IMG/VR virus record: IMGVR_UViG_3300043418_000072 | Coordinates: 62,001-126,000 of that record | Reading direction: 5' to 3' (one strand) | DNA: 64,000 nt | The notes under the pieces: generated by a model | The model's database searches: none | Told to the model about the DNA's origin: nothing | The model's input: only the letters and a program-made list of their open reading frames with translations | Made by a program: the position numbers and the translations under genes | Shown: positions 38,898 to 60,402 of the stretch, piece by piece | How positions within the stretch are numbered: the first letter of the stretch is position 1 | Layout of the letters: the number at the start of each line of letters is the position of its first letter

Positions 38898-38943
38898 GTG
38901 TTCTCCAATGTAATGTGTAGTATATAGATATATTTAGAAAATA

Positions 38944-39882: not shown

Positions 39883-42552
39883 TTATTCCCAACTAAACAA
39901 ACTATCAAACGTTGTTTTAATGTCAGTGCTCTCAGAGATCTTCCACTCCAATACTCCCAACAAGTTCTCAACCTTTTGGTCCACGATAGTGGTTTCCATT
40001 AAGTCTTGGTCAAACGGCAAATCCTTGAACCATTGCGGGATGTGTGCTTCGTCGGTTGGATAACCAACGCTGGTATAACCCAATGGATTATCCTTTAGCT
40101 TACATACGATAGTCTTCATACCGTCAACAATACCTGTTGAGTAGTTGTCACTGTGCATACGCTTTAGGCTGTTCCAGTTCATAGCGGCGCGAACGTGTCC
40201 GGGCATGTTGGCTTTACCTTGTGCAACTTCTGCCGCAGTGTACTTGGTTAAGTTGTTTACACGTTTGGGTGTGCCCTTTTCCCAAGCTGGCTTTGCAGCA
40301 AACTCTAGTTTGAAGTTACGCACCTTGTCAATTACAACTTGGCGTACATCGTCGCCTTCGCTAGTTAACACATCAAGCAAAATCTCACTCAGGAAGTCTT
40401 GTACAATCTTAGGTGTATCACTACGCTTCAAGTCAAGGCCCATGGCTTTAACTTTGCCTGGCTTACCATCTGTATCCAATCGCTTGTTTTCCAAATCGTA
40501 AATTAGCACTGCGTAACGTTTCTTCTTGATAAACAAACCTTTGTAAGCAACTAGTTCACGTCCACCTTTAATGATAGCACCCATTTCTCGCGGACAGTGA
40601 CATGCACGTTCCATGAATTCCGGAAAGCTATCGTTGACTCCGTCAGCAATGGTATCGTAGAGTTGAACGCAGATGTCTTTGTTCCACTCCATCGTACCTG
40701 CTTCTACTTCCGCTTTAATGGCAGGCCACGCACTAAAGTATACCGAGTCTGTGTCACCGTAGATAACCGAGTCACCAACGTGGTCATATTTGCCAGTAAT
40801 CGCTTCGTTGACTGTTGCGTCCATGTGCTTGGCGATGATGCGGCCAGTGAGCGTTGTGCTCTGACCAATGCGTTGATCGAAGAAGCGACAACCTGCATTG
40901 AGGATGGCGCCGTATAAGCTGTTGAGGTTAATTTTTTTAACGAGCTGTCGCTTGTCCCAGAACGCTGTGTCCTCAGGAGTTGTTGCGGTCTTCTTTTTGG
41001 CTTGCATTTCTTTTCGTTCGGCATACCATCTTTCTAGCAGTCCGGGAATAATACCCTTCATGTCATATTTAAAAATTGTACCATTGGCACTGATAGTCCA
41101 AGGCTGATTACCTTCAAAGATAATCTTCCACACATCGGCTGCACTGTGTACAGTTTCGCCGCCACCTTCCCAATCAATGGTGATTTCTGTACCGGGCTTG
41201 CCTTCCATTACCGCTTGATACTCTAGTGTACCAAACATGTTTTCCCAAGCATCTGCAAAACTAGACCCTGCGGCCATTTTGTCTGCAATATACTTGTCAG
41301 TCATTGTGGTTCGCAGTTGTCCGACGATTGTTTCTGGGCCCATGTTAAGGGCTCGAATAGCCGAGGGGTAGAGCGAGTTAATGTCAATCGCTCCGATGTA
41401 GTTGTGTACTCCCTTTTTGGGGTAAGCAACGTAGGCACCTGCCGCTTGTGTTTCACCTTGATCATCTCGACTCTTTCTATTAGGAACAATCATACCTCTT
41501 GCGTGAGCTTCGTTGATAATCGCCTGCTCCGTTACAGCTACCGCACCCATTGTGGTCTGTAACAACACGGTGTTGTCGTGTGCAAGTTCGTTAGCAAGAT
41601 CTAGGAAACGTAGTTTCTTGTCTAGCTTTGCTAACAACATGGTATCTTGTCGGTTATATTCAATAAACGTAGGAAAGTCTTTGTTGTACAATTGGTCCAA
41701 CGTGCCTTCGTAGGCTGTCTTACGCTCATCTAGTTCATATTCGCCAATGGCGTCCAAACTATAACTGTGTCGTTCTTCATATGTGTACTTGCGGTACAGT
41801 TGCATATAGTCCAAATGCACACGACCCAACAAGTCGAATGTCAATTGTTCTGCACCAAAACGTTCAAACATACGCTGCTTCGGCATTTGTCCCCACAAGC
41901 ATAATCGTCTAGTGTCGTCTTTACTCAACACCTTAGTAATACGCATTGTGGTATAGGGAATATCAAAGCCTTCACTGTTCCAACCACTTAGGATGTCTGC
42001 GTCTTCAATCAAGTCAAGGAACGTGTCTAGCATGTCCTTTTCTTTTTCAAACAGATAGCAGTTTTCAAAGCGATTACAAATCTCTTGTGCAGTTTCCCAG
42101 CTATAGGTCTTAGGTGGTACTACTAGAGTAACCATCTTGTCTAGCCAGTCTAGGTACACAGAGATAGCAGTAATTGGGTTAAAGGGATCTTCAGGTCGAC
42201 TGTAACCACGTACTGGATCAAAGTCGACCTCAATGTCGAAAAAGGCTGTTTGTAGCTTAGGTGAGCTAGCGCCTAAGTAGTTACTTTCAAGGCAACGAAA
42301 GATTGGGTTAATATCACTTTCCCAAAGTCTCTTGTCGCTGTTGATGCGTAGCTCTTTCTGGTACTCTTTGTTGTTACGAGTACTAAATCTAGACACAGGT
42401 GTGTCGTAGATGGTGCGGAACTTGCCGCGTGGATCGTCATAATAAAACATGTATTCGGCTGGGTATTCACGAAAAACACGTTCGCCGTTAACTCGTTCTA
42501 CTACATGGATCTTGTCTTTTGCTCTGTCAAAGATTGCGTCAACGTAACTCAT
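39883..42552 (-). CDS. Family B DNA polymerase (gp43-like)
   Basis: Exo I FDIEV, Exo II WNSEGFDIPY, DINSLYPS, K.NLNSLYG, YGDTDS and KKRY motifs. Confidence 0.97.
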   Translation of the reverse strand: MSYVDAIFDRAKDKIHVVERVNGERVFREYPAEYMFYYDDPRGKFRTIYDTPVSRFSTRNNKEYQKELRINSDKRLWESDINPIFRCLESNYLGASSPKLQTAFFDIEVDFDPVRGYSRPEDPFNPITAISVYLDWLDKMVTLVVPPKTYSWETAQEICNRFENCYLFEKEKDMLDTFLDLIEDADILSGWNSEGFDIPYTTMRITKVLSKDDTRRLCLWGQMPKQRMFERFGAEQLTFDLLGRVHLDYMQLYRKYTYEERHSYSLDAIGEYELDERKTAYEGTLDQLYNKDFPTFIEYNRQDTMLLAKLDKKLRFLDLANELAHDNTVLLQTTMGAVAVTEQAIINEAHARGMIVPNRKSRDDQGETQAAGAYVAYPKKGVHNYIGAIDINSLYPSAIRALNMGPETIVGQLRTTMTDKYIADKMAAGSSFADAWENMFGTLEYQAVMEGKPGTEITIDWEGGGETVHSAADVWKIIFEGNQPWTISANGTIFKYDMKGIIPGLLERWYAERKEMQAKKKTATTPEDTAFWDKRQLVKKINLNSLYGAILNAGCRFFDQRIGQSTTLTGRIIAKHMDATVNEAITGKYDHVGDSVIYGDTDSVYFSAWPAIKAEVEAGTMEWNKDICVQLYDTIADGVNDSFPEFMERACHCPREMGAIIKGGRELVAYKGLFIKKKRYAVLIYDLENKRLDTDGKPGKVKAMGLDLKRSDTPKIVQDFLSEILLDVLTSEGDDVRQVVIDKVRNFKLEFAAKPAWEKGTPKRVNNLTKYTAAEVAQGKANMPGHVRAAMNWNSLKRMHSDNYSTGIVDGMKTIVCKLKDNPLGYTSVGYPTDEAHIPQWFKDLPFDQDLMETTIVDQKVENLLGVLEWKISESTDIKTTFDSLFSWE

Positions 42553-43511: not shown

Positions 43512-44612
43512 TCACAAGCTCAATTCGTCATCTTGCTTGTGAAGGTGTGCTTTTATTAATTTATCAATATATCCAAGGTTGCGTAAAACTTTGTAGGCCA
43601 AGTTTTCTACACCAAACTCACCGTATTGGTCTAGTCCACTTCTGCGCATCTTGCGGATCTTATCTGTAATGCGTTGTATGTCTGCTGAATCATCTGCGGT
43701 AGCTAATGCGGTATCGATTTGTTTAATTAGGTCGTGTACTTTGTGGTTAACCGCAGAATCATCAATGCTTGGTGGTTCAAACTTGGGTTCGTTAATCCAA
43801 CGATCGTTCAGGATACTGTAGACACCTGCACTAACTGGTGGTTCTTCAGAATCCTCTACATATAGTTCTACATCGTATCCACGAATGGTTACATCGTGTG
43901 CGTCATTCCATATTTGTTTTTTAGCACGATAAAACGCCGCAGCAATATCGTCGCATTGTAGGTCAGAGTAGCGAGTGACAATATGAAGGTCAAAATCGCT
44001 GTATTTCGTGTAGTTATAGTTACACATACTACCGGTTAAGACGATATCTAGCACCTTAAAGTCAGGTATTTCCAAGTAGTCTACAAACACCTTGGCGATC
44101 TGCATTAGCTTTAATTTAACTTCTGGACGTAAGCGATCGTTTTTCCATGCAGCAGAATTTAGGGTGTCGTGGTAAGCAATGTTGTTTTGTACGTATTCAA
44201 AGTCTTCTTTGATAATAGCAGGCTCGTTAAAGAACTTAGGGTACTTCTTGCCAAACTCACGCAAAACAACCCCAGCCATTGCGTTTGCTTCATTTTCTTC
44301 TGGACTACCTGTTGCGCCTGCGCCGGGTGGTAAACGATCTTCTTCGCGCTGCCGCCAATGCACTAGCTCGTGTGCTAGTGTACGTAGAATATCAATCGGG
44401 TGACGGTGTTCGATTGCAATGTAAATGGTTTCCGTTGCATCGTTATATGCACCAAAGCTACCTTGTTCATCATTGCCCGGCATTACTAGTACCGGGACAA
44501 TTTTAGGTAGCTTTTCAATCTCAAGGATGCGAACAGCGATAGGCAAAAACTTTGCTATCGCATGTACGAATCCCGAAGTTGATTTATCTGTGCTTCTTGG
44601 CATCGTTGGCAA
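43512..44612 (-). CDS. HExxH metallopeptidase-like domain fused to a Pol-beta-type nucleotidyltransferase
   Basis: LAHELVH...ENEANA, then GS..NYNY...SDFDLH...DVELY. Confidence 0.7.
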   Translation of the reverse strand: MPTMPRSTDKSTSGFVHAIAKFLPIAVRILEIEKLPKIVPVLVMPGNDEQGSFGAYNDATETIYIAIEHRHPIDILRTLAHELVHWRQREEDRLPPGAGATGSPEENEANAMAGVVLREFGKKYPKFFNEPAIIKEDFEYVQNNIAYHDTLNSAAWKNDRLRPEVKLKLMQIAKVFVDYLEIPDFKVLDIVLTGSMCNYNYTKYSDFDLHIVTRYSDLQCDDIAAAFYRAKKQIWNDAHDVTIRGYDVELYVEDSEEPPVSAGVYSILNDRWINEPKFEPPSIDDSAVNHKVHDLIKQIDTALATADDSADIQRITDKIRKMRRSGLDQYGEFGVENLAYKVLRNLGYIDKLIKAHLHKQDDELSL

Positions 44613-45753
44613 ATTGTTTGTTAGTTGCTTTAACTATGCCACTAAATCGTTTGTTACCACGATCATACTCGCCACGCTTGTCGGATGCACTTGCATCGGC
44701 GGCAGCGGTTGTTTTGTATTGTGCTAACTTCTCATTAGACAATTCATTAATTGGATTGTCGCTAGTTGGCAATTTAGCACGTAGCTGATCTGCCATTTGT
44801 TTGAAGTGCTGTGCTTGGGTATCACGGCCATAGCGTTCTGCTTTAGCTTGACGCTTTTCGTAGTCAGTGATCTGTGCCCATAGTGCATTGTGCTTGCGCT
44901 CGTCTGCACCTTCTGCTACTTTATTAGTGTAATCGTCGCTCGGGCCGCTTGGATACTTCTCGTACTCAGTATAACGCTGTCTTGCCAACTTCTTGGCTTC
45001 TGGGTTAGCGTCACGTAATTGTTTGTATGTGCCCATGTGTTGAGCCATAATCTGTTCGGATGTGCCCACACGCACTCTTACAGGTAGATAATCTTTATAG
45101 CTTGGGCAGAACAATTTAAACAATGATTCGGGGTGTTTGACTTTATAGTACTCAACAGTGTCTGTCATCCACTGGTCAATGTCTGCTCTACCACGTGGGT
45201 AGTTCCCTGGATCGGCCATCTCCGGTTCTGGTGCTTTCTTCTTGAAGCGATCGAGGATACCTTCTTTAACTTCAGCAGGTGCAGCTAGTGTCATCTTGCT
45301 CATGCCCTTGCCCGATTGCTGCCAAACACGATACATTTTACCATCTGCACCTTTTAACACCATAGCATTGCCAGGAATACGACTAGAATCATATTGTACA
45401 ACCATGGCATTTTGTCCACCAACTCGAACGTGTGGTTTTTGGTCATCAAAATGTTGAGCTCCGACTGCTAGTGCGCCAGCAACAACCGGGGCGCCAAGTA
45501 ATGTAGCAGTATCTTTCCAGCTTTCTGGTAATTCGTGCCCTGTAACTTCCTCAACTTCGCCACCTGTGCTGTATACAATCTCTTCAATTTGATTAAAGAT
45601 TGAACGGGGAGCAGTCATGTAATCACCGGCCCAATCAATGTAGTTCCCAAACTTCTGCATTACATGTTCATATGAACGTTCACCGTCAATGACAAAAGTT
45701 ACGGTACTTTCTGTACCCTTGTTGAGCCCCTCAAATATCTGATTTAAAAACAT
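44584..45753 (-). CDS. Mosaic polyprotein (putative virion-internal cargo)
   Basis: MFLNQIFE leader; modules separated by VKEG, KVAEG and INE. Confidence 0.6.
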   Translation of the reverse strand: MFLNQIFEGLNKGTESTVTFVIDGERSYEHVMQKFGNYIDWAGDYMTAPRSIFNQIEEIVYSTGGEVEEVTGHELPESWKDTATLLGAPVVAGALAVGAQHFDDQKPHVRVGGQNAMVVQYDSSRIPGNAMVLKGADGKMYRVWQQSGKGMSKMTLAAPAEVKEGILDRFKKKAPEPEMADPGNYPRGRADIDQWMTDTVEYYKVKHPESLFKLFCPSYKDYLPVRVRVGTSEQIMAQHMGTYKQLRDANPEAKKLARQRYTEYEKYPSGPSDDYTNKVAEGADERKHNALWAQITDYEKRQAKAERYGRDTQAQHFKQMADQLRAKLPTSDNPINELSNEKLAQYKTTAAADASASDKRGEYDRGNKRFSGIVKATNKQFANDAKKHR

Positions 45754-45754
45754 G

Positions 45755-48109
45755 TTATACTCCGCCGCCGGCCTTCTTTATTAGTGTATTTAGTTGGGTA
45801 GCAGTTGACGGGTTTGACATAACATTACCAATGGCAGGAGCCATTGCAGCAATGGTATCTTTATCCATTGAATTCATTGGTGCACCGGTGTCAGTCTTTT
45901 GCAATGTCTGTGCTGCCTTAGCAGGGTCAATTTGCACCCCAGCGGTCTTTAAGTTAGCTAGATTTTGTTGTAGCTTGGCTTGATTTTGTTTAGCTGCCGC
46001 AGCTTGTGCTGGATTAGGTGCAGCGCCCGGGGCGGTTGCTTGTGTAGATGGTTGAGTTGCACCAGCTACGCCACCTGCGGTAGCAACAGGAGCAGGAACT
46101 GCTTCGTCAACTGTTTCTTGACCGGGGCAAATATCGTTGTAGTTGTCCATAGTCAATGTTTGACCACCTGCGCTTAATTTAATTAAACGTTCAGCAACGT
46201 CATGTAGATCCATATCTGTTTTGGCATCTTCGCGAGCATATTCAAACAAGCGAATCATTAATGGAATATCCATTGTAACTGTGTCAGTTGGGTTTGTCCC
46301 TTCTTCCATTGATTGCGCTGCTGCACGAATACCTATTACTGTAGCGTTCTTGCTGTCAGCCCACTTGTATGCTGCTTCTTGACTGCTGAATTCCTTGCGC
46401 CACATTACACGCTGATCGCGCTTGTTGTAAGCATAACCATATGCTTCAACGGCTGTGTCGTTTTGAATAGGCTGTGCTTCGTCGCTGTAGTTTTCTTGTA
46501 CCTGTGGTTCAACTAATTCGCCAATCTTGTTACGAATAAGACCAATTAGCTTGCGATGTGTACCAGTTAACACACGGTTCTTTTCAATGAAGTTAAGAAT
46601 GTGCTCTGTTTCTGCTTTATACTTTGCTCTCCACTGCGGAGTTCTAGCGGTAGTAATGTCCTTGACGTTGTCTAATCTATCGGCAAGTTTAATTACAAGA
46701 CCGTAGCTGCTCATTGCAGCCATCTTGTGTGCTAAGTACTGAGCCTTGCCCATCTGTTTAATTTGTTCAGGATCACTTGTTAGTTCTTGGACCAGGCTAG
46801 CAACTAGACCACCAAACAAGTCATGCAAAATCTCATGTGTAGTATCGGTATCTTCAACTGTGTCGTGCAAATATGCAGCACTAATTAGTGCTTCAAGGTT
46901 GTGAGATTGTTTATATTGTCTAATATGATCAGCAACACGCATCGGGTGAGTGATGTATGGATCACCACCGGCTCTAGTTTGACCAGCGTGAGCTTGAGTT
47001 GCGTACTGTAACGCTTCTTCCTCGCCTTCAGCCATTGGTCTATCTGCGCCGTTGATAGTAATCATTGGGTTACGAACACCCTTCTTCTTGCACCATGCTT
47101 CAACTTTAGCTTCTGCTTCTTCTGTTGATGTTGCTGTTACTGTGACAAAATGTGCGTCTGCCGCAGTAGGTCCGTACTCAACTGTTGCACGGTACTTGAC
47201 TGGTTGAGATTGTTCTTCCGCCACACCTTGCCTTGGTAATAACTTGTTAATAGTAGTTTTAACTTTCAATCCCTTTTGTGGATGGTCAAATATAACGCCA
47301 ACATCATTGATGTCTTTGATGAATGCAATTTTGCCTGAACCCTGATAGCCACGCACACAAACAGTATCGCCTACTTTATATTTGGGAGTTGCTGCGAATC
47401 CACCTCCGCCACCTAAGCCTTCCGCCACACCTTGCTGTTGTGGGTTGAACTCTAAGGCACCTTGTGTATTACCCATGATGATATTGGCAATCTTGTAGAT
47501 GTTGTCAAAGGTCAAATCAAAGTGACGCTCAAACGGATGACCTTTTAACAAACTAAATGTAGTGAGTAGTTTGCCTTTTATTTGTCCAGTAAAGCCGCCG
47601 CCAGTGTACTTACCAATTTGGATAGCTCCGCGAGTGCTATGCGCACCCTTACGACCTGCTCTAGTCTCGTAGTATGAGTAAAGCATTGTTGGACCAAACT
47701 CCATTGGGTCATGTGGAACAAAGCGGGCTTTGATTGTTGTCTTAACAACGTTTTCTACACAGTCAAAGTCTTTAGCTACGATTTGTTTTACTTGTTCGAT
47801 GAATTCTGCCCATGGAATAAACTTACGTGAGCCTCCACCTTCGTCTGGGGCAAATTCGTCTACTTGTTGTTTGTACTGCGCGAACTCTTCTGCAAGTGAA
47901 TGTTTAACTGCATTCTCGGTTAGTTCTTTTTCTAGATCAGCAAGCATGTTCTTGCTTTCTGCTGCGCCCACTAAACGACCAGCAAAAGGATGTTTACCAT
48001 CTTTACGCTTAGTGGCTTTTTCAGTACCGCGAACTTGATCGCCGGGTTTTTGTTCTGGCTCTCCAGCGAACTTGTTCATTGACTCTAGTAGTTTACGCAT
48101 ATCGCTCAT
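45755..48109 (-). CDS. Mosaic polyprotein containing a Mesh1/SpoT-type HD hydrolase module (about 46500-47025)
   Basis: A..AH.GQ.R..G.PYI.HP..VA, AAYLHDTVEDT, V.ELT and KLADRLDN motifs; QGVAE linkers. Confidence 0.8.
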   Translation of the reverse strand: MSDMRKLLESMNKFAGEPEQKPGDQVRGTEKATKRKDGKHPFAGRLVGAAESKNMLADLEKELTENAVKHSLAEEFAQYKQQVDEFAPDEGGGSRKFIPWAEFIEQVKQIVAKDFDCVENVVKTTIKARFVPHDPMEFGPTMLYSYYETRAGRKGAHSTRGAIQIGKYTGGGFTGQIKGKLLTTFSLLKGHPFERHFDLTFDNIYKIANIIMGNTQGALEFNPQQQGVAEGLGGGGGFAATPKYKVGDTVCVRGYQGSGKIAFIKDINDVGVIFDHPQKGLKVKTTINKLLPRQGVAEEQSQPVKYRATVEYGPTAADAHFVTVTATSTEEAEAKVEAWCKKKGVRNPMITINGADRPMAEGEEEALQYATQAHAGQTRAGGDPYITHPMRVADHIRQYKQSHNLEALISAAYLHDTVEDTDTTHEILHDLFGGLVASLVQELTSDPEQIKQMGKAQYLAHKMAAMSSYGLVIKLADRLDNVKDITTARTPQWRAKYKAETEHILNFIEKNRVLTGTHRKLIGLIRNKIGELVEPQVQENYSDEAQPIQNDTAVEAYGYAYNKRDQRVMWRKEFSSQEAAYKWADSKNATVIGIRAAAQSMEEGTNPTDTVTMDIPLMIRLFEYAREDAKTDMDLHDVAERLIKLSAGGQTLTMDNYNDICPGQETVDEAVPAPVATAGGVAGATQPSTQATAPGAAPNPAQAAAAKQNQAKLQQNLANLKTAGVQIDPAKAAQTLQKTDTGAPMNSMDKDTIAAMAPAIGNVMSNPSTATQLNTLIKKAGGGV
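47215..47231 (-). repeat. QGVAE linker repeat, copy A
   Basis: GCAAGGTGTGGCGGAAG, identical to copies B and E. Confidence 0.85.
47419..47435 (-). repeat. QGVAE linker repeat, copy B
   Basis: GCAAGGTGTGGCGGAAG; 20 nt identity with copy E. Confidence 0.85.
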
Positions 48110-49569
48110 TTGTAGATTCCTGTACCGATCTTAGGGGTTAAACGTTTTGCAACATTCTTTACACGCTTAGGAACACCTGTCCCTGGCTTGCCTGTTCCGC
48201 CTGCTGGGCCAGTAGCAAATCCACCTGCGCCTGTGCCGCCAGCAGTCATCTCGCTAACTGTTTGCTTGCCTTCAGCAACACCTTGACCTTTTAAGCTACG
48301 AGTAGCTGCATTCAATTGACTAATACTTACACTGCGAGTTGTATCGCTGTTCCAGATTAAGTCAACACGTAAAGGTCTGCCATTTTTATAAAAATGCAAT
48401 TCGTTGCTGGTAGTTTTGAAATTATCTGCACCATACTGACGTAACACTTTTACAGCGTCATTCAATGGCATTGTTTCTGCAACGCCCTCAGCAACACCTT
48501 GCTCCAAAAACTCTTCGTCGGTTAAATTACCGGCTAGCAATGCTTCTAGGGTGTCAATCTGTTGATTATAGATGTCGATTAGATATTCAATTTCCATGTC
48601 GTCGTAAGCATCTGAACCGTCATACCATGTTTCGTCAACTGCTTCTGCTTCGGCATCTGTCAGTCGACGCTTTTGTGCCAATAGCTTTTTCTCTAGCATG
48701 TTGGCAATAGGTGCATACTTACGCACAACCTGTTGCCACATAGGCTCTTGTGCAAACTCTGGAAACTGTGCAGCGGCACCTTCCACCGGATCAAAGTCCT
48801 GGAATAGGTTTAGTGCTAGCACATCCTTAACTGGCATGCCAGCTTTTACTAAGTATTCGTTTAGTTGGCCTTCCGCCACACCTTGCTCACCATCTTGTTG
48901 TGCTTTGGCAGCGGCCGCACGCTTCTTGCGGAAGATTTCACGGAAGTATGCTTCATCATCTGGGTTTACACCAGGTGTTTGTTGACCACGGTGTCTCTGC
49001 TTTGCAGGAGCATTACGAGCTGCGTAATAATCTTCGTCGCTGTCAAAGTTGCGTGGATCCACTTCGTTTACTTGTCCAGTGAAGCCTTTATATGCGCCTT
49101 TAACTGCGCCAGTTACGCCGCCAACAATCTTCTTGCCCACTTGCGCCATAAACGGAGTCTTCTCCTGTGGAGCAGTCATTCTGTCCACTGACTTACGTGC
49201 ATTAGCTTCTGCGTCACGCTGTACATCAGCCATTGAATAACCTTCTTCCAATGCAGCTTGCAATTGAGCTTCGGCTGATTCAAATGCAAATGTAGGCATC
49301 GCATGTAAGTCAACTTCTTTGTCTTCGTAGCTTAGGTATTCGTATACTGTACGTAGGTAATCGTTTGCAAGAGTAATCTTCTCGCTTACCCATCCCTCGA
49401 TGTTACCATTGTCGTTAGCTTGGGCTAGAATCTTGTGTAGCTTGATAGCGTAGTCTGCTGCGTGGTAGCAGTCGGCACGAGCCATTTGTACTTCGTGGTC
49501 TGAGTGCATTTCACCTGCATCTTGGGCGATAAATGCGTTGTGTTCTGTGATAAAATCTGTTGTCTTCAT
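48106..49569 (-). CDS. Mosaic polyprotein (putative virion-internal cargo)
   Basis: MKTTDFITE leader, three QGVAEG linkers, TAAATA upstream. Confidence 0.65.
   Translation of the reverse strand: MKTTDFITEHNAFIAQDAGEMHSDHEVQMARADCYHAADYAIKLHKILAQANDNGNIEGWVSEKITLANDYLRTVYEYLSYEDKEVDLHAMPTFAFESAEAQLQAALEEGYSMADVQRDAEANARKSVDRMTAPQEKTPFMAQVGKKIVGGVTGAVKGAYKGFTGQVNEVDPRNFDSDEDYYAARNAPAKQRHRGQQTPGVNPDDEAYFREIFRKKRAAAAKAQQDGEQGVAEGQLNEYLVKAGMPVKDVLALNLFQDFDPVEGAAAQFPEFAQEPMWQQVVRKYAPIANMLEKKLLAQKRRLTDAEAEAVDETWYDGSDAYDDMEIEYLIDIYNQQIDTLEALLAGNLTDEEFLEQGVAEGVAETMPLNDAVKVLRQYGADNFKTTSNELHFYKNGRPLRVDLIWNSDTTRSVSISQLNAATRSLKGQGVAEGKQTVSEMTAGGTGAGGFATGPAGGTGKPGTGVPKRVKNVAKRLTPKIGTGIYK
48271..48285 (-). 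repeat. QGVAE linker repeat, copy C (synonymous variant)
   Basis: CAAGGTGTTGCTGAA. Confidence 0.75.
48475..48501 (-). repeat. QGVAEGVAE linker, copy D (variant, doubled)
   Basis: CAAGGTGTTGCTGAGGGCGTTGCAGAA. Confidence 0.75.
48870..48886 (-). repeat. QGVAE linker repeat, copy E
   Basis: GCAAGGTGTGGCGGAAG. Confidence 0.85.
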
Positions 49570-49595
49570 GCGAATTTCCTGTATATTATATTTAG

Positions 49596-49865
49596 TTACA
49601 CAATAAACTTGAGGCCTGCACCTTGTCCGTTTACTGCAACATTGTTAGTGATAAATTGTGCATCAGTGTTGCTGCATTTTTCAATACGTAATTCATGCCA
49701 GCCATTGTCTAAATAAACTTCAATGTGCTCACGGATATAGTGTCTACTGGTTTCCCAAATAAACGTGCGCTCCGTTAGCAGTTGGTCATCAATATAGACT
49801 CTGTATGCTGGCGGTGTTGTGTCCCACTTGCACCAAACGTCTACGTCAATGCAAGTGTGGTTCAT
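49596..49865 (-). CDS. Small beta-rich hypothetical protein
   Basis: PPAYRVYIDD.LLTER...G.HELRIE. Confidence 0.65.
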   Translation of the reverse strand: MNHTCIDVDVWCKWDTTPPAYRVYIDDQLLTERTFIWETSRHYIREHIEVYLDNGWHELRIEKCSNTDAQFITNNVAVNGQGAGLKFIV

Positions 49866-51577
49866 TTTCTAGCCTTTAGGGTCGCTAACTGTTCTTGTAA
49901 CTGTGTTAAACGGCTTAATAACTGCTCTGCTTCTTTGATCTTGTGTTTAGGTAACTTACGGGTTAAGCCGTATGCTTTCATCATTTTAGGTAATGTGCTA
50001 GCGTCAACATCATTTTGATCGCCCATGGTGGCCATTACGTATCGTGGATCTTTGCTGTTGCTAACAACACCTACACCTGCTGCATCTTCGCCTAGTGGGT
50101 TATGCAATGCGCCCCACCCGGGATGACGTGGATCGTTAATGTCCAACGAGCTATCGTCTGCTGGTTTGCGTTTAGCTAACCGGTCTTTTTCATGTTCTTT
50201 GTCAATCAAGTCACCAACTAATGCTTTCATCGGATCAGTCTTGCGCAATTCTTCACGTGCTCTTAGCTGCGCCATGTGACGATTGAAGTCTGCCGCATTA
50301 AATGGGGCATTGTGGTCGTAGGCTTCATCAATGGCAGCATCTGGCAATTCTACATTAAATTTTATTGCAATTTCGGCTCTAAAATTGTCATATGCTTTGC
50401 TATTATCGAATATAAACGTGTGTGACATTCCGTGTTTGCTTGTTTGATTGCTCGGAAATTTAATAGTCTCGCCTGCATCGTTTACAAATAAGTATTGATT
50501 TCCACTTTTTCCAACTAGCGTTGCATGTATAAGATCGGAGTTGAGTGGTATGATTCTATTCTGAATCAGCATCAATGGAGTCACAATGTATTTTTTATTT
50601 TTTACTGGCGTACTAGAAAATCTATCTAGCCCGGTAAAATATTCAGCGGTGTGGTTATCTGATTCTAGCAATGTTCCATCAATGTAGTATGCTTCGAAGA
50701 TAGCCATCTTGTCTTCTATTGACAGCTCCTCACCCAACTCTGTCCACTGCGGGACTGCATTTTCATTGGCATGCTTAAAGTACTGCACTTCGCGCTCGTG
50801 CTTTTGTGCAGCGGCTTTAGTTGGGAAAGTACCTAGATTTTTGTTACCATGCTTACTAAGCAAACGGTACTGACTACCGTGTTTAACAATATGCTCGCTA
50901 ATACCAGGAATAGCACTTGCACTGTCTGTAGCATGTGGACTGATAGAGTCCTCATTCATTGGGATTTTGTCTAGGATACGGCCCACTTCTGGGTCATTGC
51001 GACCGTACATTTGCAATAGGTATTCGCCACGTGCTTTAGCATCGTTACGGATACTGTTCCACAATGCGCGATTTTCAGTGCCGTGGCTAGCATCGTATTG
51101 CTGACCATTGATTGTGATGACTTTCTTGCGTTCTGCTGCAATAATAACGTAGCCATGCTTATCGGCAGTTTGACACTTGTTTAGATCTTCAAACTTTTGG
51201 TAGTAACTAGGCTGGCCATCTTTCTTGTATGTGCCAGGCTTTAGGCGATCTGCGTCAGGGGCGCCAACTGCAACTACAAACACAGTAGATGCAGGGTCAA
51301 ATTGTGGAGGAAGGATGTAAGGGCTTTTAACTTCTAAGATGCGATCGTTAGGCACACCAGCGGCGTGCATTAACACTGTCTTGTCTGTGAAGTTAAAGGG
51401 ACTTTTAGGCAGCTCTGTCTTGTTGCTAGTTGCAATGTAGACGTTATCGCGACCGTATTTGGCTTGTAGGCTTTCAAATACGTCGCGATGTCCTAGATGG
51501 AAGGGCTGGAAACGCCCTGGGTAAATTACAACTACTTGCGGCTGTGCCGCTTCAGTAAACATTTCAGCAATAAACAT
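49862..51577 (-). CDS. HIGH-motif cytidylyltransferase-like domain followed by mosaic modules
   Basis: MFIAEMFTE leader; YPGRFQPFHLGH, SPF.F..K and VG..D..R motifs; later modules bounded by MNE, ISE, LLE, IDE and LGE. Confidence 0.75.
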   Translation of the reverse strand: MFIAEMFTEAAQPQVVVIYPGRFQPFHLGHRDVFESLQAKYGRDNVYIATSNKTELPKSPFNFTDKTVLMHAAGVPNDRILEVKSPYILPPQFDPASTVFVVAVGAPDADRLKPGTYKKDGQPSYYQKFEDLNKCQTADKHGYVIIAAERKKVITINGQQYDASHGTENRALWNSIRNDAKARGEYLLQMYGRNDPEVGRILDKIPMNEDSISPHATDSASAIPGISEHIVKHGSQYRLLSKHGNKNLGTFPTKAAAQKHEREVQYFKHANENAVPQWTELGEELSIEDKMAIFEAYYIDGTLLESDNHTAEYFTGLDRFSSTPVKNKKYIVTPLMLIQNRIIPLNSDLIHATLVGKSGNQYLFVNDAGETIKFPSNQTSKHGMSHTFIFDNSKAYDNFRAEIAIKFNVELPDAAIDEAYDHNAPFNAADFNRHMAQLRAREELRKTDPMKALVGDLIDKEHEKDRLAKRKPADDSSLDINDPRHPGWGALHNPLGEDAAGVGVVSNSKDPRYVMATMGDQNDVDASTLPKMMKAYGLTRKLPKHKIKEAEQLLSRLTQLQEQLATLKARK

Positions 51578-51614
51578 AAAAATTCCGTTATTGCTGTATT
51601 TAGTCTAAAACGGC

Positions 51615-52085
51615 TTATAGGTTTTCCAATAGCCAGAGGTAGAAAGGACTGCTAAATTCGAGAATGTACGTACCAGTCCACCCCATGTTTACACACTGAT
51701 CAATGCGATCAACAATAGCACCGTTATATACTTGCTTTTTAACTGGAGCGTAATGGCTCTTTGAGTGTCTCAAGTGCCCAATGTCAATGTCGTCGATTTC
51801 AATGTGATCAACGTTAAGTAACATATCCTTTACGATAGTAAAGTTTTCGCCAGAGTTGTCCTTAACAGTGTCTGAGCTTTCTTTGTTTAACAAGGAAATC
51901 TCCAATTGATGATCGCCGTCAACTAAGTCAACTAAGAATTCGTGGTATTCTGTTTCACCAGATGCAGCGGCAATATATCCCGCTGCATATTCTTTACCAG
52001 AAATAGCAATGCTGTACTGGGGTTTCTTGTCCCAGTACGTACCACTAATGCCGATTCGAAACTTGATCTTTTCAATTTCTTGCAT
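51615..52085 (-). CDS. Beta-rich hypothetical protein
   Basis: P.Y.I...G.HQLEI..NK...D.LLN..IEID...F.SPFY.WLLE pattern. Confidence 0.7.
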   Translation of the reverse strand: MQEIEKIKFRIGISGTYWDKKPQYSIAISGKEYAAGYIAAASGETEYHEFLVDLVDGDHQLEISLLNKESSDTVKDNSGENFTIVKDMLLNVDHIEIDDIDIGHLRHSKSHYAPVKKQVYNGAIVDRIDQCVNMGWTGTYILEFSSPFYLWLLENL

Positions 52086-53195: not shown

Positions 53196-53951
53196 TCACG
53201 GTTTCACGATCTCGTGAATTTTTCCGACCATCCCCGGAGCAATCAATCCGATCATTGTTGTAATAGATGGGTCGTTGGTATAAACAAAACAACCCCATAT
53301 GTATTTCAATGGGCCCGATAACATGTTCATATTAGCTTTAGAAACTTTAACTTCGCTGCCCATTGTTTTTAAATAATTAACAATTGACTGCTTGGTTTCC
53401 ATGCTGTAGGATCCGTCTCTGAGCACTATCTTGTATTTGTATTCTTGCTTAGAATTAGGTGCTGCAATAATATGACCCGCTTCTAGCAATGCCTGCTGTT
53501 CCGGGCTAGCTGGTGTACTAATACTTAATAGTCTGCTAGCAATAGTTCGATCGTAGTTTAGTCTTGTGGCAATGTCTCTAAGAGTCTGCTCGTCTTTAGT
53601 ATAAACCTGTAGCCAGGGCTCCTCAATGCGCATTCGTATACGATTACCATATCCATTTTTGATACTGCGCAATTCTTCAAGGAATACAGGGTCTGATTTT
53701 TTTAGTTCATCTGCTTGCCGCAGTGCCCAATTGGATTGTGATGCCCAACTTCCGCCATAGTTAAAATGCTTTTGCTTAGATAGTCTGTCGGCTAAGTGAT
53801 TTGCAATGTAATCATTGGGCCTCGTGTCGGTGATAGACCTACTACCGTGAGCCTCTATGACCAGCTTATAACAAAACTGGCCATAGAACTGCTTACGTGT
53901 ATCTTCGCAAACGATCTTAGGATTTAGTTTGGTCCAGAACAATGAAACCAT
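53196..53951 (-). CDS. Hypothetical protein
   Basis: 251 aa, two similar halves ending VYTKDE and VYTNDP. Confidence 0.65.
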   Translation of the reverse strand: MVSLFWTKLNPKIVCEDTRKQFYGQFCYKLVIEAHGSRSITDTRPNDYIANHLADRLSKQKHFNYGGSWASQSNWALRQADELKKSDPVFLEELRSIKNGYGNRIRMRIEEPWLQVYTKDEQTLRDIATRLNYDRTIASRLLSISTPASPEQQALLEAGHIIAAPNSKQEYKYKIVLRDGSYSMETKQSIVNYLKTMGSEVKVSKANMNMLSGPLKYIWGCFVYTNDPSITTMIGLIAPGMVGKIHEIVKP

Positions 53952-56208
53952 CTTCGTTTACTGTAGGTTGTGGTGCGATGTCAAACGCTGATTGTGCTTC
54001 GAATGTAAACTCTTTATTAACATAGTCTACTACCATGATGGTGTTAGGACCAATGTTATCAAACAAGATTTTCTTACTCAATGGTACTTTAATCAAGTCG
54101 TTAATCTTACGTTGCACAGGGCGAGCACCCATCTTAGCATCAAAGCCTGTAGCAATGATTTCATCAATAGCCGACTCGCTCAAGCGCACTTTGATCTGAC
54201 GTTCTGCAAGCAACACGTTGATTTCGTTAACAAACTTGCTGACAATCTTGCGCATACTCAATTGGTCCAGCTTGTTGAACTTAACAATGCCGTCTAAGCG
54301 ATTGCGGAACTCTGGCTTAAAGAAGTCCTTAACTGCTTTGTCATCCTCGTCAGTCTTTTGCATACTGCGACCAAAACCAATGTTGTTACGCTCGTTTGCT
54401 GCTGCACCCAAGTTACTTGTAAGGATCACAATACAGTTACGGCAGTCAGCTTTCTTGCCGTTGCTGCTAGTAACCATACCTTCATCCATTAAGCTCAACA
54501 AGATGTTAGATACGTCGGGGTGAGCTTTTTCAATCTCATCCATTAAGATGATACTGTTAGGGCTTTTCTCAACGTCACTAATCAACATTCCGCCGCCCAA
54601 GTTGCCATCGTCGTAACCAACATAGCCAGGAGGCGCACCAATCAGTTTAGCCACGCTGTGCTTCTCTTGGTACTCGCTCATATCGTAACGCAACAGTTTC
54701 ATGCCCAAGTTCTCTGCAAGTAACTTAGCCAGTTCAGTTTTACCTGTACCAGTTGGGCCAAGGAACAAGAAGTTACCAACGGGTTTGTTCAAGCTCTTCA
54801 AGCCAGCTCGTGCCACGTAGATCTTTTCCAATACAGAATCAACCGCTTGGTCTTGTCCATACAATTTAACTTTAATGTTGCTTTCAAGGTTAGTGATTGC
54901 ACCACCATTGTTGGTATTACCAATTTGTTCAACCGGGATCTTAGTAAACTTGCTGATTGCATCCACAATATGGCTACGTGTAACAACAAAGTCCACAGTC
55001 TTAATCTTAAGACGAGCACATGTGCTGTCAATCAAGTCAATTGCTTTGTCAGGCAGCTTCTTGTCAGTTTGGTAACGAACGCTAAGATCAACTGCTGCGT
55101 CAATAGCTTCGTCTGTAATAACGCCACCATGGAATGATTCGAACTTCTCTTTGAGACCTTTAAGAATATCCTTAGCAACTGCTGGAGTTGGCTCATCAAC
55201 AGTAATACGCTGGAAACGGCGCATCAATGCACGATCCTTCTCAAAGCTCTGGCTGTATTCTTCCCAAGTTGTGCTTGCTAACACTTTGATTTGGCCTTTA
55301 GTCAATGCAGGCTTGATCATATTACCAAAGTCGACGCTGCTGTTGCTACCAGAACCTGCCCCACGCATCTGGTGCGCTTCGTCAATAAACAAAATTGCCT
55401 TGCCTTTTGCTTTGAGACCTTTAATAACGTCTTGGAACTTTTCTTCAAACTCGCCGCGGTACTTAGATCCAGCAAGCAAGCTACCAATGTCCAAGTTGTA
55501 GACAGTGTGGTCTTTCAAGTACTCAGGTACAGTGCCGTTGACAATGTTAAGGGCAAGACCTTCTGCAATGGCAGTTTTACCTACACCGGGATCGCCAATC
55601 AACAACACGTTGCTCTTGTTACGCTTAGCCAACACTTCTGCAATTTCGTCCAGCTCGTATTCGCGACCAATTACTGGATCGATGGTGCCTTCGATTGCCT
55701 GCTTGTTTAGATTAGCACAGTACTGCTCAATGAACTCGTCTGCTTTCTCTTTGCCAGCTTCTTTGCGATGTGCTTCTTCTGTATAGTGCTTGTTGTAGTA
55801 GTCGACAAGTTTTGCACGATCCATGCCGTACTTGACCATGAAGTAGTGTGCATAGGTGCTGTTCTCAGAGTGCAAGCTCAGGAACAAGTCAATGACTTGA
55901 ACGTGTGTACGTGCAGAAAATAACACTTGCGTAAATGCTCGATTAAACACACGCTCCAGCGCATGAGTCTTCTTTGGCTCAGTAACATCGGGGTTAACCA
56001 AGTCTGTTAGGCCTGCAATGTATGTTTCGAGGTCTTTGACCAAGCCATCAGTATCGATGCCGTAGCCGTAAATCAATTCATTGAATGGCTTGTATTTAAC
56101 AAGACAGAGCAACATGTGTTCTGCAACCACGTACTCGTGTTTGTGTTCTTTTGCAAGGTTTGTTGCTTCTGCAACGATGTGGTCAATTTCTGGATTAGTT
56201 TGTAGCAT
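53917..56208 (-). CDS. clpA: ClpA-like Hsp100 AAA+ ATPase
   Basis: Clp N-domain, two Walker A motifs (GDPGVGKT, GPTGTGKT), GAPPGYVG and an IGF loop (NIGFG); no ClpB middle domain. Confidence 0.88.
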   Translation of the reverse strand: MLQTNPEIDHIVAEATNLAKEHKHEYVVAEHMLLCLVKYKPFNELIYGYGIDTDGLVKDLETYIAGLTDLVNPDVTEPKKTHALERVFNRAFTQVLFSARTHVQVIDLFLSLHSENSTYAHYFMVKYGMDRAKLVDYYNKHYTEEAHRKEAGKEKADEFIEQYCANLNKQAIEGTIDPVIGREYELDEIAEVLAKRNKSNVLLIGDPGVGKTAIAEGLALNIVNGTVPEYLKDHTVYNLDIGSLLAGSKYRGEFEEKFQDVIKGLKAKGKAILFIDEAHQMRGAGSGSNSSVDFGNMIKPALTKGQIKVLASTTWEEYSQSFEKDRALMRRFQRITVDEPTPAVAKDILKGLKEKFESFHGGVITDEAIDAAVDLSVRYQTDKKLPDKAIDLIDSTCARLKIKTVDFVVTRSHIVDAISKFTKIPVEQIGNTNNGGAITNLESNIKVKLYGQDQAVDSVLEKIYVARAGLKSLNKPVGNFLFLGPTGTGKTELAKLLAENLGMKLLRYDMSEYQEKHSVAKLIGAPPGYVGYDDGNLGGGMLISDVEKSPNSIILMDEIEKAHPDVSNILLSLMDEGMVTSSNGKKADCRNCIVILTSNLGAAANERNNIGFGRSMQKTDEDDKAVKDFFKPEFRNRLDGIVKFNKLDQLSMRKIVSKFVNEINVLLAERQIKVRLSESAIDEIIATGFDAKMGARPVQRKINDLIKVPLSKKILFDNIGPNTIMVVDYVNKEFTFEAQSAFDIAPQPTVNEDGFIVLDQTKS

Positions 56209-57040
56209 CTTGATTTTTAGTTAGTTGACGAATGGCTTCTACCTGAGTTTCTGTTAAATTTGTTGGAACAGTGATATTTGCAATCAAATACAAATTACCC
56301 CTGTTGGATTGATTTAGCGCATAAAGACCCTGTCCTCCAATTTTAAATTTAGTCCCGGGCTGCGTACCTTGTGGTACTGTGAGACTAAAAGTTCGGTTGT
56401 CTAAAGTGGTAAACTCTTTGCTACATCCAATTATAGCATCAAGGCAATCAATGTCAATGGATGTGAACAAATCAATTCCGTTAATTTGGAATCTCGGGTG
56501 CGGCATAACAACAATATTAACATACAAATCGCCACGCGGCAATGTGGTAAAAAGGTTGTCGCCGAGACCCGGATACTTAATGCTGCTGTCTGAGTATACA
56601 CCACGCGGGATTTCGATATCAACTACTTGGTCTGATGTTGACCGGTTTGTATTGATATTCAGTGTGCGCTTTTGAACTTCCAATGTTTCTGCTAAGTTTA
56701 TTTGCACAGTAACTCGAATGTCTCGGTTACGCTGTTGGCGCTGTTGGAATCCGGCACCATTAAATGCAAACCCAAAATTACGCATTAGGTCATTGATATC
56801 CATATTGCCGGTATTAAAGCCGTGCTGTCTATTGCCAAATGGGTTACTGCGTTCAGCATCGTATTGCTCACGCTTTTCGGGAGTTTCAATCGCTGCGTAT
56901 GCTGCTTGGATTTCTTGGAACTTAGCTGTGTTGCCACCTTTGTCGGGATGGTTCTTGCTGGCAAGACTGCGATATGCCTTTTTGATATCGTCTTGTGTTG
57001 CCGACTCGGTTAAGCCAAGCGTTTCATAGTGAGTTGACAT
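56195..57040 (-). CDS. DnaJ-class (type II, CbpA-like) chaperone
   Basis: J-domain with HPD, G/F region, C-terminal GDLY/GNLY domain, no Zn finger. Confidence 0.9.
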   Translation of the reverse strand: MSTHYETLGLTESATQDDIKKAYRSLASKNHPDKGGNTAKFQEIQAAYAAIETPEKREQYDAERSNPFGNRQHGFNTGNMDINDLMRNFGFAFNGAGFQQRQQRNRDIRVTVQINLAETLEVQKRTLNINTNRSTSDQVVDIEIPRGVYSDSSIKYPGLGDNLFTTLPRGDLYVNIVVMPHPRFQINGIDLFTSIDIDCLDAIIGCSKEFTTLDNRTFSLTVPQGTQPGTKFKIGGQGLYALNQSNRGNLYLIANITVPTNLTETQVEAIRQLTKNQDATN

Positions 57041-58624: not shown

Positions 58625-58894
58625 TCATTTAGATACTCCCTCAAAAATTTGTTTTTGTACTCGATACCATTCCTGCCAGGTATCAACCTTTACTGCACAC
58701 TCGTAGTAGGTGCTGTAATTCTGCGTCACCGTCGCAGTCAACTCACTCAACTTCACCCCGTTCTCTACTGTCGTCAGCTGTGGACATGACTCCATAGCGG
58801 CTTTGCCCGGTTCGTCGGGGAACTTAGCCACAACCGGTGCAGTTGTGCTACATCCTGATAATAATAGTGCAAACGCGATTAACGTATATTTCAT
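58625..58894 (-). CDS. Putative o-spanin (Rz1-like lipoprotein)
   Basis: Lipobox LLSGC, Pro-rich, C...NY..Y..C; lysis cluster. Confidence 0.7.
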   Translation of the reverse strand: MKYTLIAFALLLSGCSTTAPVVAKFPDEPGKAAMESCPQLTTVENGVKLSELTATVTQNYSTYYECAVKVDTWQEWYRVQKQIFEGVSK

Positions 58895-59274
58895 TAGCAA
58901 TTCCATTTACGCAAAGCCAGTGCCTTGCGAGTTGGCTTACCGTTTTCGTCCTTCATTGGGCCTTCCATGCCACTCATTCGAGCACAGAAACTCTTACGGC
59001 GCTTGGCATCTTTGCTGTCCGGCTTTAGTTCACTAGGCTTTTTAGTGACTGCGGTTTGTAGTTTGCTGCCTGGATGCTCTCTACGATAGCTGTCAACACC
59101 CTTTTGATTTAGGCCGCCATTTTTATTCTTACCTGACTTCTTTTGCCAAGCTGCGGTTTCGTCAACGGCACTTTCTTCTGCCTTTTCACAACTACCCGGA
59201 GAATACTCCTTTGTACCAGGAACACGCTTATAACCGTCCCAACATGCTTCTGTAATAATTTCGTTAATTTTCAT
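58894..59274 (-). CDS. MKINEII-leader protein with CWDGY module and basic AAWQ..GKN..GGLN module
   Basis: Two modules joined at AVDE; RRKSFCARM...WNC C-terminus. Confidence 0.7.
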   Translation of the reverse strand: MKINEIITEACWDGYKRVPGTKEYSPGSCEKAEESAVDETAAWQKKSGKNKNGGLNQKGVDSYRREHPGSKLQTAVTKKPSELKPDSKDAKRRKSFCARMSGMEGPMKDENGKPTRKALALRKWNC

Positions 59275-60366: not shown

Positions 60367-60402
60367 GCTCCTAAATAGCTACAGTATTTAGCTAGTAGGA
60401 GC
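60367..60402 (-). promoter_or_regulatory. Late-type promoter (TAAATA, 60385-60390) inside a hairpin that sequesters the endolysin RBS
   Basis: GCTCCTA-C-TAGCTA-AATACTG-TAGCTA-TT-TAGGAGC then TTTT and the ATG. Confidence 0.65.

Follow-up and report, generated by a model that had tools for sequence, protein, structure and literature searches.

Mosaic phage proteins that exchange cassettes at a short translated joint: a candidate system of packaged and injected effectors

Background

Why would a phage string many small and unrelated protein modules into long chains, and why would so many of the joins end in the same few residues? These questions are raised by five neighbouring genes, called A to E here, in a stretch of 64,000 nucleotides taken from the IMG/VR virus record IMGVR_UViG_3300043418_000072 (positions 62,001 to 126,000 of that record, a contig of 354 kb). 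The whole stretch is referred to below as the window, and its features are listed in Table 1. The original prediction, made from the letters of the window alone, described the five open reading frames (ORFs) as mosaics of unrelated short modules, and compared their N-termini with the peptides that target proteins to the head of phage T4. The positions of the five ORFs are confirmed, all on the minus strand. Two more ORFs with such N-termini lie far from the cluster. One of them, 58894-59274, is present as listed but on the minus strand, and the leader of gene C (MSDMRKLLE) had been missed.

Judged by its T4-type DNA polymerase, the window phage is a member of the T4 superfamily. The best matches of this polymerase in cultured phages come from jumbo phages, with identities of 52% for Sinorhizobium phage Phosso (469 kb), 48% for Atu_ph07 and about 42% for Rak2-like phages.

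Our answer to the two questions has parts of different strength. That the proteins are built of cassettes that meet at joints we regard as practically settled. A very large mosaic family, previously undescribed and found in uncultured T4-superfamily jumbo phages, takes in genes A to D together with the two distant leader genes, and probably gene E as well. The full mechanism, in which cassettes are exchanged and the chains are made late, targeted to the prohead, cut there and injected, is a larger claim, to which we would give a probability of about 0.55.

Cassette exchange between near-identical phages

Three haplotypes from IMG/VR, about 95% identical and with the same gene order, can be compared: that of the window (shared by L001 and L003), L002, and L004/L005. 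The products of A, B, C and D are 571, 487, 784 and 389 residues long in the first, 429, 359, 846 and 421 in the second, and 571, 421, 848 and 389 in the third. At least five cassette swaps in these four genes separate the three haplotypes.

One swap can be followed from gene to gene. Module M3 (122 residues) lies between two QGVAEG joints in gene B of the window and is missing from gene B of L002. A copy with 105 of the 122 residues identical (86%) stands in gene C of L002, at residues 237-358, between QQQGVAEG and GEGVAED, and there it takes the place of the unrelated 62-residue cassette which the window has at residues 232-293 of C. In gene A, a cassette of 146 residues is either present or absent, with breakpoints after ..ANE and ..IDE. 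In gene D of L002, the cassette that follows the identical leader MFLNQIFE/G (the slash marks the boundary, here and below) is replaced, and homology returns after L-x-E. In gene B of L005, the alignment shows that the segment between LEE/G and xNE/V is replaced. At all mapped breakpoints, the residue just before the break is a Glu that has a hydrophobic residue two positions ahead of it (P3), against a background of 3%. The swapped cassettes are found at other positions in other members of the family; that of C residues 232-293 occurs in P0202, P0133, P0072 and P0006.

It is at the joints that cassettes enter or leave a gene, or pass to a neighbouring one. Gain and loss of modules exactly at the linkers is what the original prediction had suggested looking for in related phages, and the haplotype alignments show it. 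Since cassettes are swapped at the linkers, the modules of these phages are clearly not collinear and invariant.

A large family of mosaic proteins

An exhaustive HMMER search with the product of gene B returned 1,667 representative proteins, including 81 below 1e-30, and the matches run module by module. All members of the family are metagenome-derived. M1 (residues 1-109 of B) is always N-terminal; M2, M3 and M4 stand anywhere in proteins of 136-1,386 residues, and the sequence past the ends of a module is unrelated among relatives. One protein of 943 residues (P0091) consists of 13 modules of 34-161 residues, each closing with ..GVAE. The description of these proteins as mosaics of unrelated short modules holds well beyond the window, with modules of 50-160 residues in any order in the relatives.

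Most cassettes, including M1-M5 and many others, had no match in Pfam and PHROG scans, and gene B as a whole gave no family above threshold in either. For M4, a PDB profile search returned nothing, and a fold search nothing significant (RnlA came closest, at E=0.06, followed by HicA with a TM value of about 0.5 at E=0.5). The recognisable cassettes are an HD module like alarmone hydrolases in C, an NMNAT-like module in A, a Pol-beta-type nucleotidyltransferase together with a zincin-like module in E, and DUF6321. The HD module matches Pfam HD_4 at 3.4e-15 and PDB chains of MESH1, RelA hydrolase and small alarmone hydrolases at 1e-15 to 1e-8, and it stands alone in L006/L007. Residues 18-89 of A match Pfam CTP_transf_like (E=1.5e-5) and a PHROG cytidyltransferase, while residues 3-234 are 33% identical to the huge-phage record LR756508. 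Residues 334-388 of D match PHROG 26930. To judge from the family names, enzymes of these types would fit takeover of the host or counter-defence acting on nucleotide signals.

Cultured phages hold little of this. In 50,697 phage records, a near-identity DNA search with the region gave zero matches. With tblastn against the same records, which was run for A, B and C, the transferase module alone was matched for A, and for C the matches were limited to the HD module and one small module.

The two modules of E are separate ORFs in one locus (L083), and in another (L008, a related phage contig of 214 kb) they occur in reversed order inside an ORF of 1652 residues. This ORF, at 11878-16836 of L008, is itself a mosaic in which the nucleotidyltransferase and zincin modules are followed by many small repeats. 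Another ORF of L008, of 344 residues, has an apparent Nudix motif, recognised by eye only.

The DUF6321 module also ends longer mosaic proteins in PHROGs and a cyanophage protein. The protein of Synechococcus phage S-P4 (L287, 3638-5227) has 529 residues, is basic and rich in Cys, and shares both DUF6321 and the Cys-rich module of P0091. Its depositors labelled it 'structural protein T4 GC0119', a label whose proteomic basis could not be confirmed. The gene has been described within a mobile cassette of the gp17-gp18 hypervariable region (PMC3037559).

The joints as peptide and as DNA

The five copies of QGVAE that had been counted in the window are exactly the five found in all six frames, and all lie within B and C. 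In 157 proteins (the 150 best hits to B and the window proteins, 74,808 residues together), 300 copies of GVAE are found where 2.8 would be expected, set in 289 distinct contexts. The consensus of the joint in this set is (K/E)(Q/E)GVAE, followed by G, T or A. Across the family, the joint is nearly invariant as (Q/E)GVAE with G, A or S behind it. A second joint, xLNE, stands ahead of several module types (QLNE/Y.., LNE/VDPRN.., LNE/FAPG..). The ends of pairwise local alignments (high-scoring segment pairs) are piled up about fivefold at the joint Glu. In the contig L008, the joints are of the LNEFAPG type and there is no GVAE at all.

The surroundings of M4 allow the joint to be described position by position. 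The last residue (P1) is Glu in 92 of 97 junctions on the C side and in all 97 on the N side. P3 is V, I, L or M in 94-96%, P2 is A, T, S, E or D, P1' is G, D, E, A or S, and the outer positions are free. Conservation of this kind is what a protease site of the aliphatic-x-Glu class would show. The more general claim, that hydrophobic-x-Glu motifs mark the boundaries of modules, stands on solid statistics for GVAE, for xLNE and for the breakpoints mapped by comparison. It does not stand for single cases of VKE or LLE, which carry little weight alone because such a Glu is found at about 3% of positions in the cluster ORFs.

In an AlphaFold2 model of M4, the core has pLDDT (predicted local distance difference test) values above 90, and both flanking joints, at 42-76, lie outside the folded core. 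The joint linkers are predicted to be unstructured. Models were made of single modules only, and MAFFT alignments of whole B and of M3+M4 were discarded as misaligned (fragment identities of 15-30% vs about 70%).

The joints are also alike as DNA. The preferred codons GGT GTG GCG GAA are used in 3 of 6 joints in the window and in 10 of 13 in the distant locus L083. An exact 17-mer, CAAGGTGTGGCGGAAGG, which reads QGVAEG, is present in at least 120 viral stretches of IMG/VR. In these loci 66 of 99 further GVAE sites have GTGGCG, against about 2.3% expected, with the searched sites themselves excluded. Synonymous variants such as GTT GCT GAG and GTA GCA do exist. Given this conservation, we read the joint-coding repeat as itself a substrate of cassette exchange. 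What is new in this family is a translated repeat, present at every boundary between cassettes, whose DNA and peptide are both conserved. A full-text literature search for QGVAE or GVAEG returned alpha-synuclein papers only and no phage literature. Internal translation starts after the joint were considered as well and are ruled out, as there is no consistent start codon downstream.

The leader

In its general form, the leader has 8-10 residues, M-x-(I/L/T)-x-(D/E/Q)-(F/I/L)-(I/F/L)-x-E, with a terminal Glu like that of the joints. A regular expression for the N-terminal pattern as first described, M-x-(I/L/T)-x-(E/Q/D)-(I/F/M)-x-x-E, run over six frames of the window, matched four times, each time at an ORF start (726, 51577, 59274 and 49569). 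The leader of gene D, MFLNQIFE, is one residue shorter than this expression requires. The N-terminal pattern that had been described as shared is thus present in A, B and the two distant genes, in a shorter form in D and as a variant in C, but E has none. Three synonymous differences separate the coding sequences of the two closest leaders, MRINEIITE and MKINEIITE, and because of these we take the peptide and not the DNA to be what is conserved. The leader type recurs in hundreds of diverged family members. That one leader type would head many unrelated payloads had been foreseen, and it is seen across the family. In the AlphaFold2 model of M1, which has helices at 11-51 and 59-88, the leader is a separate short helix (4-9) of low confidence.

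In phage T4, propeptides of 10-20 residues, the capsid-targeting sequences, direct proteins into the prohead and are taken off by gp21 (PMC5694885; PMC3012670). The suspected likeness of the leader to these sequences holds against the N-termini in the T4 record (NC_000866). There, IPII and IPIII start with MKTYQEFIAE/A, IPI has ..TITE/A, gp24 begins MAKINELLRE/S and gp22 MLKEQLIAE/A, and gp23 is cut at ..FLTE/A. The leaders MKTTDFITE/H, MKINEIITE/A and MFIAEMFTE/A have the same length, pattern and terminal Glu as these prohead-targeted N-termini. As far as the sequences go, this is a resemblance of pattern and not a demonstrable homology. Head proteins of the Rak2-like phage pEa_SNUABM_47 (pEa47) begin in a similar way, with MLDEIFE/A, MSKLDKFLNE/S and MSQLLTE/S.

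Leaders and joints are interchangeable. M2 is preceded by the leader MKINE/ in one protein and by QLNE/ or GVAE/ in others, and it begins at the same residue behind a leader as it does inside a chain (MKINE/VDPRN vs QLNE/VDPRN), and one relative starts with MRATEFIIE/GVAEG. The nucleotidyltransferase module of E follows ..IIKE/ here, and in L083 and L008 it starts an ORF of its own with MNLKE.. or MNLQE...

Promoter-like motifs and head genes

A TAAATA-type motif had been noted before genes A and B, and it is there as CTAAATA at the same distance from both (Table 1). The same heptamer lies 11 nt upstream of the distant leader gene at 726, inside the 3' end of ORF 12-725. With 18 copies in the window against 10.3 expected, CTAAATA is mildly enriched as such, and 8 of the 18 are found 11-40 nt upstream of a start on the same strand, where we estimate that about 0.4 would be expected. 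The eight genes are A, B, D, the gene at 726, a GH19 endolysin-like gene, an Hc1 histone-like gene and two unassigned genes. The consensus of T4 late promoters is TATAAATA, and the CTAAATA pattern would fit this late promoter class. The Hc1-like protein (chlamydial histone H1-like) may be DNA-condensing and made late.

Head genes were sought in the fetched loci by local tblastn with the head proteins of T4, pEa47 and S-RIM44. Three loci that had been retrieved solely via the 17-mer (L194, L178 and L214) have a major capsid protein (MCP) about 62% identical to that of pEa47; L194 also has portal, protease and scaffold genes, and L178 has protease and scaffold genes. In all three, a GVAE polyprotein is encoded immediately downstream of the MCP gene. 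With one MCP-adjacent polyprotein, tblastn found nothing in the phage records. A portal-alignment scan returned, among the matches listed, other jumbo phages, and none of these portal neighbourhoods had an ORF with at least two GVAE.

A second link to head genes is provided by the module at residues 601-669 of gene C. T4-type head genes are nearby in 24 of the 73 loci that have this module, and wherever portal and protease were both detected, in seven loci, it lies between the two, for example in an ORF of 352 residues at 7841-8899 of L037. In the T4 record, the core proteins gp67 and gp68 are encoded in just this interval between portal and protease.

A proposed mechanism and its rivals

How might such chains be used? 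We propose the following. Cassettes would be swapped via recombination across the joint-coding repeat, typically CAAGGTGTGGCGGAAGG. The genes would be transcribed late, from T4-late-like CTAAATA promoters. The leader would act as a T4 capsid-targeting sequence and bring the whole chain into the prohead core, where a prohead protease of the gp21 type, cutting after the Glu of aliphatic-x-Glu, would remove the leader and cut every joint. The small proteins set free in this way would remain in the head until, at infection, they entered the host together with the DNA, ready-made for takeover or counter-defence. A narrower form of the proposal makes the 17-nt, six-residue element itself both recombination joint and prohead-protease site, and the whole an integron-like array of injected effectors behind one T4-type leader. 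This form is tentative, and we would sooner bet against it than on it.

Packaging, cleavage and injection are plausible and fit several independent lines, though we infer them. Several points weigh against the mechanism. In the window, the cluster adjoins genes of replication and nucleotide metabolism and not head genes, and homologues of gp21, gp22 and gp23 are known here from relatives with the same joints (L194 and L178), not from the window phage. The predicted maturation sites of the MCPs of relatives are L-x-E and not GVAE. Modules of B are in no cultured phage, as tblastn of B found nothing in the phage records; the syntenic place in Phosso, the closest cultured relative, was considered too, and it holds collagen-like or fibre-like genes and no polyproteins. 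Gene E is without a leader, and about 35 fetched loci have a zincin module of its type no more than 10 kb away from polyprotein modules. Lastly, GTG makes up 20% of Val codons and GCG 9% of Ala codons in the window genes, and at the joints each has about 67-70%. Selection purely at the level of the peptide does not predict rare codons at the joints. This suggests a role at the DNA level, which could be the primary one, with the peptide secondary and partly a by-product.

The rival that survives best takes this last point to its end. The proteins would be unprocessed and of the polyvalent type, QGVAEG would be a flexible spacer, and its DNA, CAAGGTGTGGCGGAAGG, would supply in-frame homology for recombination, the peptide being tolerated as a by-product. 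Conservation of rare codons at the nucleotide level, the recurrence of the exact 17-mer, cassette moves bounded by joint repeats, and predicted disorder of the linker, expected of any spacer, are all accommodated. What is harder to accommodate is the way in which joints drift: GVTE, GMAE, GIAE, GLAE and SVAE keep the Glu and an aliphatic P3, while P2 and P1' vary. Moreover, synonymous variants of the joint exist, xLNE and the leader end in aliphatic-x-Glu too without having the DNA motif, and an invariant acidic last residue is needless in a mere spacer. We consider this rival unlikely, though it deserves to be taken seriously.

Another protease might do the cutting. The zincin-like HExxH module at the N-terminus of ORF E would process the chains, before packaging or after delivery, and the prohead protease would be uninvolved. 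However, this module matched no Pfam peptidase model at the cut-off used for ORF E (E<=0.01), and its sole match is PHROG 87 'metallo-protease' at E=0.0026. Most polyproteins are without it, it may be just another cassette, and E has no leader. A strict Glu at P1 with an aliphatic P3 is the known signature of T4-type prohead proteases (see also PMC5694885), not of a zincin of this type. What speaks for the zincin is its company near polyproteins in the loci mentioned above, its place within the 1652-residue ORF of L008 and as a separate ORF in L083, and the proposal by Iyer, Burroughs, Anand, de Souza and Aravind (2017) of autoproteolytic release by embedded metallopeptidases (PMC5512222). We find this rival improbable.

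A role in building the head is a little less probable again. The chains would be core or scaffold material that fills the large prohead of a jumbo phage and, like gp22, gp67 and gp68, is cut at many Glu and largely expelled. T4 gp22, T4 gp24 and the scaffold proteins of Rak2-like phages do begin with similar leaders, the 601-669 module of C is at the gp67/gp68 position in many T4-type phages, and small modules without known function are numerous. But there are enzyme cassettes in the chains (HD, NMNAT-like, nucleotidyltransferase and, by eye, Nudix in L008), and content turns over fast among near-identical phages; such turnover is what conflict genes typically show and is hardly to be expected of an assembly scaffold.

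The least probable rival, in which the shared N-terminus is a common translation-initiation region or chance and the proteins are cytoplasmic in the infected cell, would suit a cluster among replication and nucleotide-metabolism genes, but not a leader whose two closest forms differ by synonymous codons, which matches at ORF starts only, recurs in hundreds of diverged members, is kept while the adjacent cassette is swapped, and agrees in length, pattern and terminal Glu with experimentally defined T4 capsid-targeting sequences.

Relation to known systems and significance

The closest comparison is with the internal proteins of T4 (IPI, IPII, IPIII and Alt). Both systems belong to the T4 superfamily and have a short leader ending in aliphatic-x-Glu, a promoter motif of the late type, and a hypervariable payload behind a conserved leader (PMC3012670). 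Delivery with the DNA is common to both if our proposal is right. The T4 proteins, however, are single small proteins with one cleavage, whereas here there are chains of up to 13 or more cassettes with a repeated internal site. There is no homology of payloads, the joint is here conserved as DNA as well, and the present system is known from genes alone.

Polyvalent proteins (PMC5512222) also combine unrelated domains of conflict type, are mosaic and are predicted to be co-delivered, and their describers likened them to viral polyproteins (PMC5512222). Two to 15 unrelated domains, several of them of conflict or effector type, with mosaic variation in one polypeptide, are what defines them, and the cluster has all of this. 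The release described for them is by embedded peptidase domains, and no universal junction motif, leader of the capsid-targeting type or site for a T4-type prohead protease is reported there (PMC5512222). Most cassettes here are, in addition, small and match no described domain.

In the giant phages phiKZ, 201phi2-1 and SPN3US, the prohead protease cuts several head proteins after Glu, in a small-x-Glu context and some at several sites, and a role in prohead targeting has been suggested for the propeptides (PMC5694885). They belong to another lineage, their propeptides are over 100 residues long, and they are without cassettes, a repeated identical joint or evidence of module shuffling. In the phage records, tblastn of A, B and C matched no head protein of these three phages. 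In MuF-fused polymorphic toxins and in the Dar proteins of P1, a part that is incorporated into the head carries exchangeable injected cargo, as we propose here. In those systems a large MuF domain is the carrier, or the carrier needs DarA and Hdf, and the general Pfam and PHROG scans found no MuF (SPP1 gp7) domain among our proteins. The cassette arrays of integrons are an analogy only. They too are ordered, exchangeable units bounded by a short conserved recombination sequence, but here the modules are in frame within one ORF, the repeat is translated, and no integrase or dedicated recombinase was identified.

If correct, the proposal means that a large and unnoticed group of environmental jumbo phages delivers dozens of pre-made small proteins at infection in a plug-and-play manner, and it widens the paradigm of T4 internal proteins from single proteins to polyproteins. 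The leader together with GVAE and LNE joints would then be a rule by which thousands of candidates for early anti-defence and takeover proteins, mostly without a family, could be mined. Leader and cleavable joint would also be natural portable parts for loading cargo into T4-type capsids, and the joint would be a rare case of one short element selected both as DNA and as peptide. Should the chains turn out not to be cleaved, the traffic of cassettes at a repeat that is both conserved and translated is still an unusual way for proteins to evolve.

Further features of the locus

Table 1. Genes, modules, joints and promoter-like motifs of the window (positions are those of the window)
Feature	Position	Strand	Remark
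Gene A	49862-51577	minus	571 aa; leader MFIAEMFTE, NMNAT-like nucleotidyltransferase, three more modules
A cassette, residues 273-418	50324-50761	minus	absent in L002, present in L004/L005
Gene B	48106-49569	minus	487 aa; leader MKTTDFITE and modules M1-M5
B module M1, residues 10-109	49243-49542	minus	helical hairpin; N-terminal in all relatives
B segment, residues 110-169	49063-49242	minus	unrelated cassette instead in haplotype L005
B module M2, VDPRN.. type	48886-49062	minus	in relatives directly after leader, xLNE or GVAE
B QGVAE joint 1	48871-48885	minus	DNA CAAGGTGTGGCGGAA
B module M3	48502-48867	minus	mobile cassette flanked by two QGVAEG joints
B double joint QGVAEGVAE	48475-48501	minus	
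B module M4	48286-48474	minus	compact alpha/beta domain; most widespread cassette
B QGVAE joint 3	48271-48285	minus	
Gene C	45755-48109	minus	784 aa; variant leader MSDMRKLLE, about nine modules
C QGVAE joint 1	47420-47434	minus	
C cassette, residues 232-293	47231-47416	minus	M3-type cassette instead in L002 and L005
C QGVAE joint 2	47216-47230	minus	
C HD module	46490-47026	minus	like MESH1/SpoT-type small alarmone hydrolases; ..PMAE just before
C module, residues 601-669	46103-46309	minus	widespread; found in head-gene clusters
Gene D	44584-45753	minus	389 aa; leader MFLNQIFE, about five modules
D cassette, residues 9-77	45523-45729	minus	immediately after leader; L002 holds an unrelated one
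D KVAEG joint	44908-44922	minus	
Gene E	43512-44603 (ORF to 44612, 366 aa)	minus	zincin-like and nucleotidyltransferase modules; without leader
E zincin-like HExxH module	44205-44603	minus	
E nucleotidyltransferase module (Pol-beta-type)	43515-44204	minus	begins after ..IIKE
Distant leader gene	726-1565	plus	279 aa; MRINEIITE
Distant leader gene	58894-59274	minus	MKINEIITE; C-terminal DUF6321 module, Pfam 2.6e-24
CTAAATA	51597-51603	minus	26 nt upstream of A
CTAAATA	49589-49595	minus	26 nt upstream of B
CTAAATA	45787-45793	minus	inside 3' end of C, 40 nt upstream of D
CTAAATA, further sites	32029-32035, 38931-38937, 60385-60391, 61532-61538		
GH19 endolysin-like gene	59734-60360		preceded by CTAAATA
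Hc1 (chlamydial histone H1-like) gene	31822-32004	minus	60 aa; Pfam 2e-14; preceded by CTAAATA
T4-type DNA polymerase gene	39883-42552	minus	
Small ORF between A and B	49596-49865	minus	89 aa; non-mosaic
Small ORF upstream of A	51615-52085	minus	156 aa; non-mosaic
ClpA/ClpB-type double AAA+ ATPase	53917-56208	minus	763 aa; just upstream of cluster
DnaJ-like protein	56195-57040	minus	just upstream of cluster

Almost every gene of the window is on the minus strand. A plus-strand island at 12-1565 holds the first of the distant leader genes, which abuts ORF 12-725. Within the cluster the genes are tightly packed: the stop of B and the start of C overlap (ATGA), 1 nt separates C from D, and D shares 44584-44612 with E. 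Gene E most likely starts with the ATG at 44603 rather than with the TTG at 44612. No Shine-Dalgarno sequence is visible at its start, and this, together with the overlap, suggests translational coupling to D. A frameshift fusion of D and E was also considered, and no slippery site is evident at the overlap. The two small ORFs next to gene A are without leader, joints or family match.

Just upstream of the cluster are genes for a ClpA/ClpB-type ATPase and a DnaJ-like protein, the latter labelled by eye from its N-terminal sequence. In L002 and L008, too, the pair lies beside the cluster, and Phosso has a gene for a Clp-family ATPase upstream of its DNA polymerase. A link of this pair to the unfolding or loading of chains is pure speculation.

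The product of gene D has a hydrophobic stretch at about residues 82-100, and the replacement cassette in L005 (within 8739-10004 of L005) starts with a hydrophobic stretch like a signal or transmembrane sequence. Some cassettes may be membrane-active.

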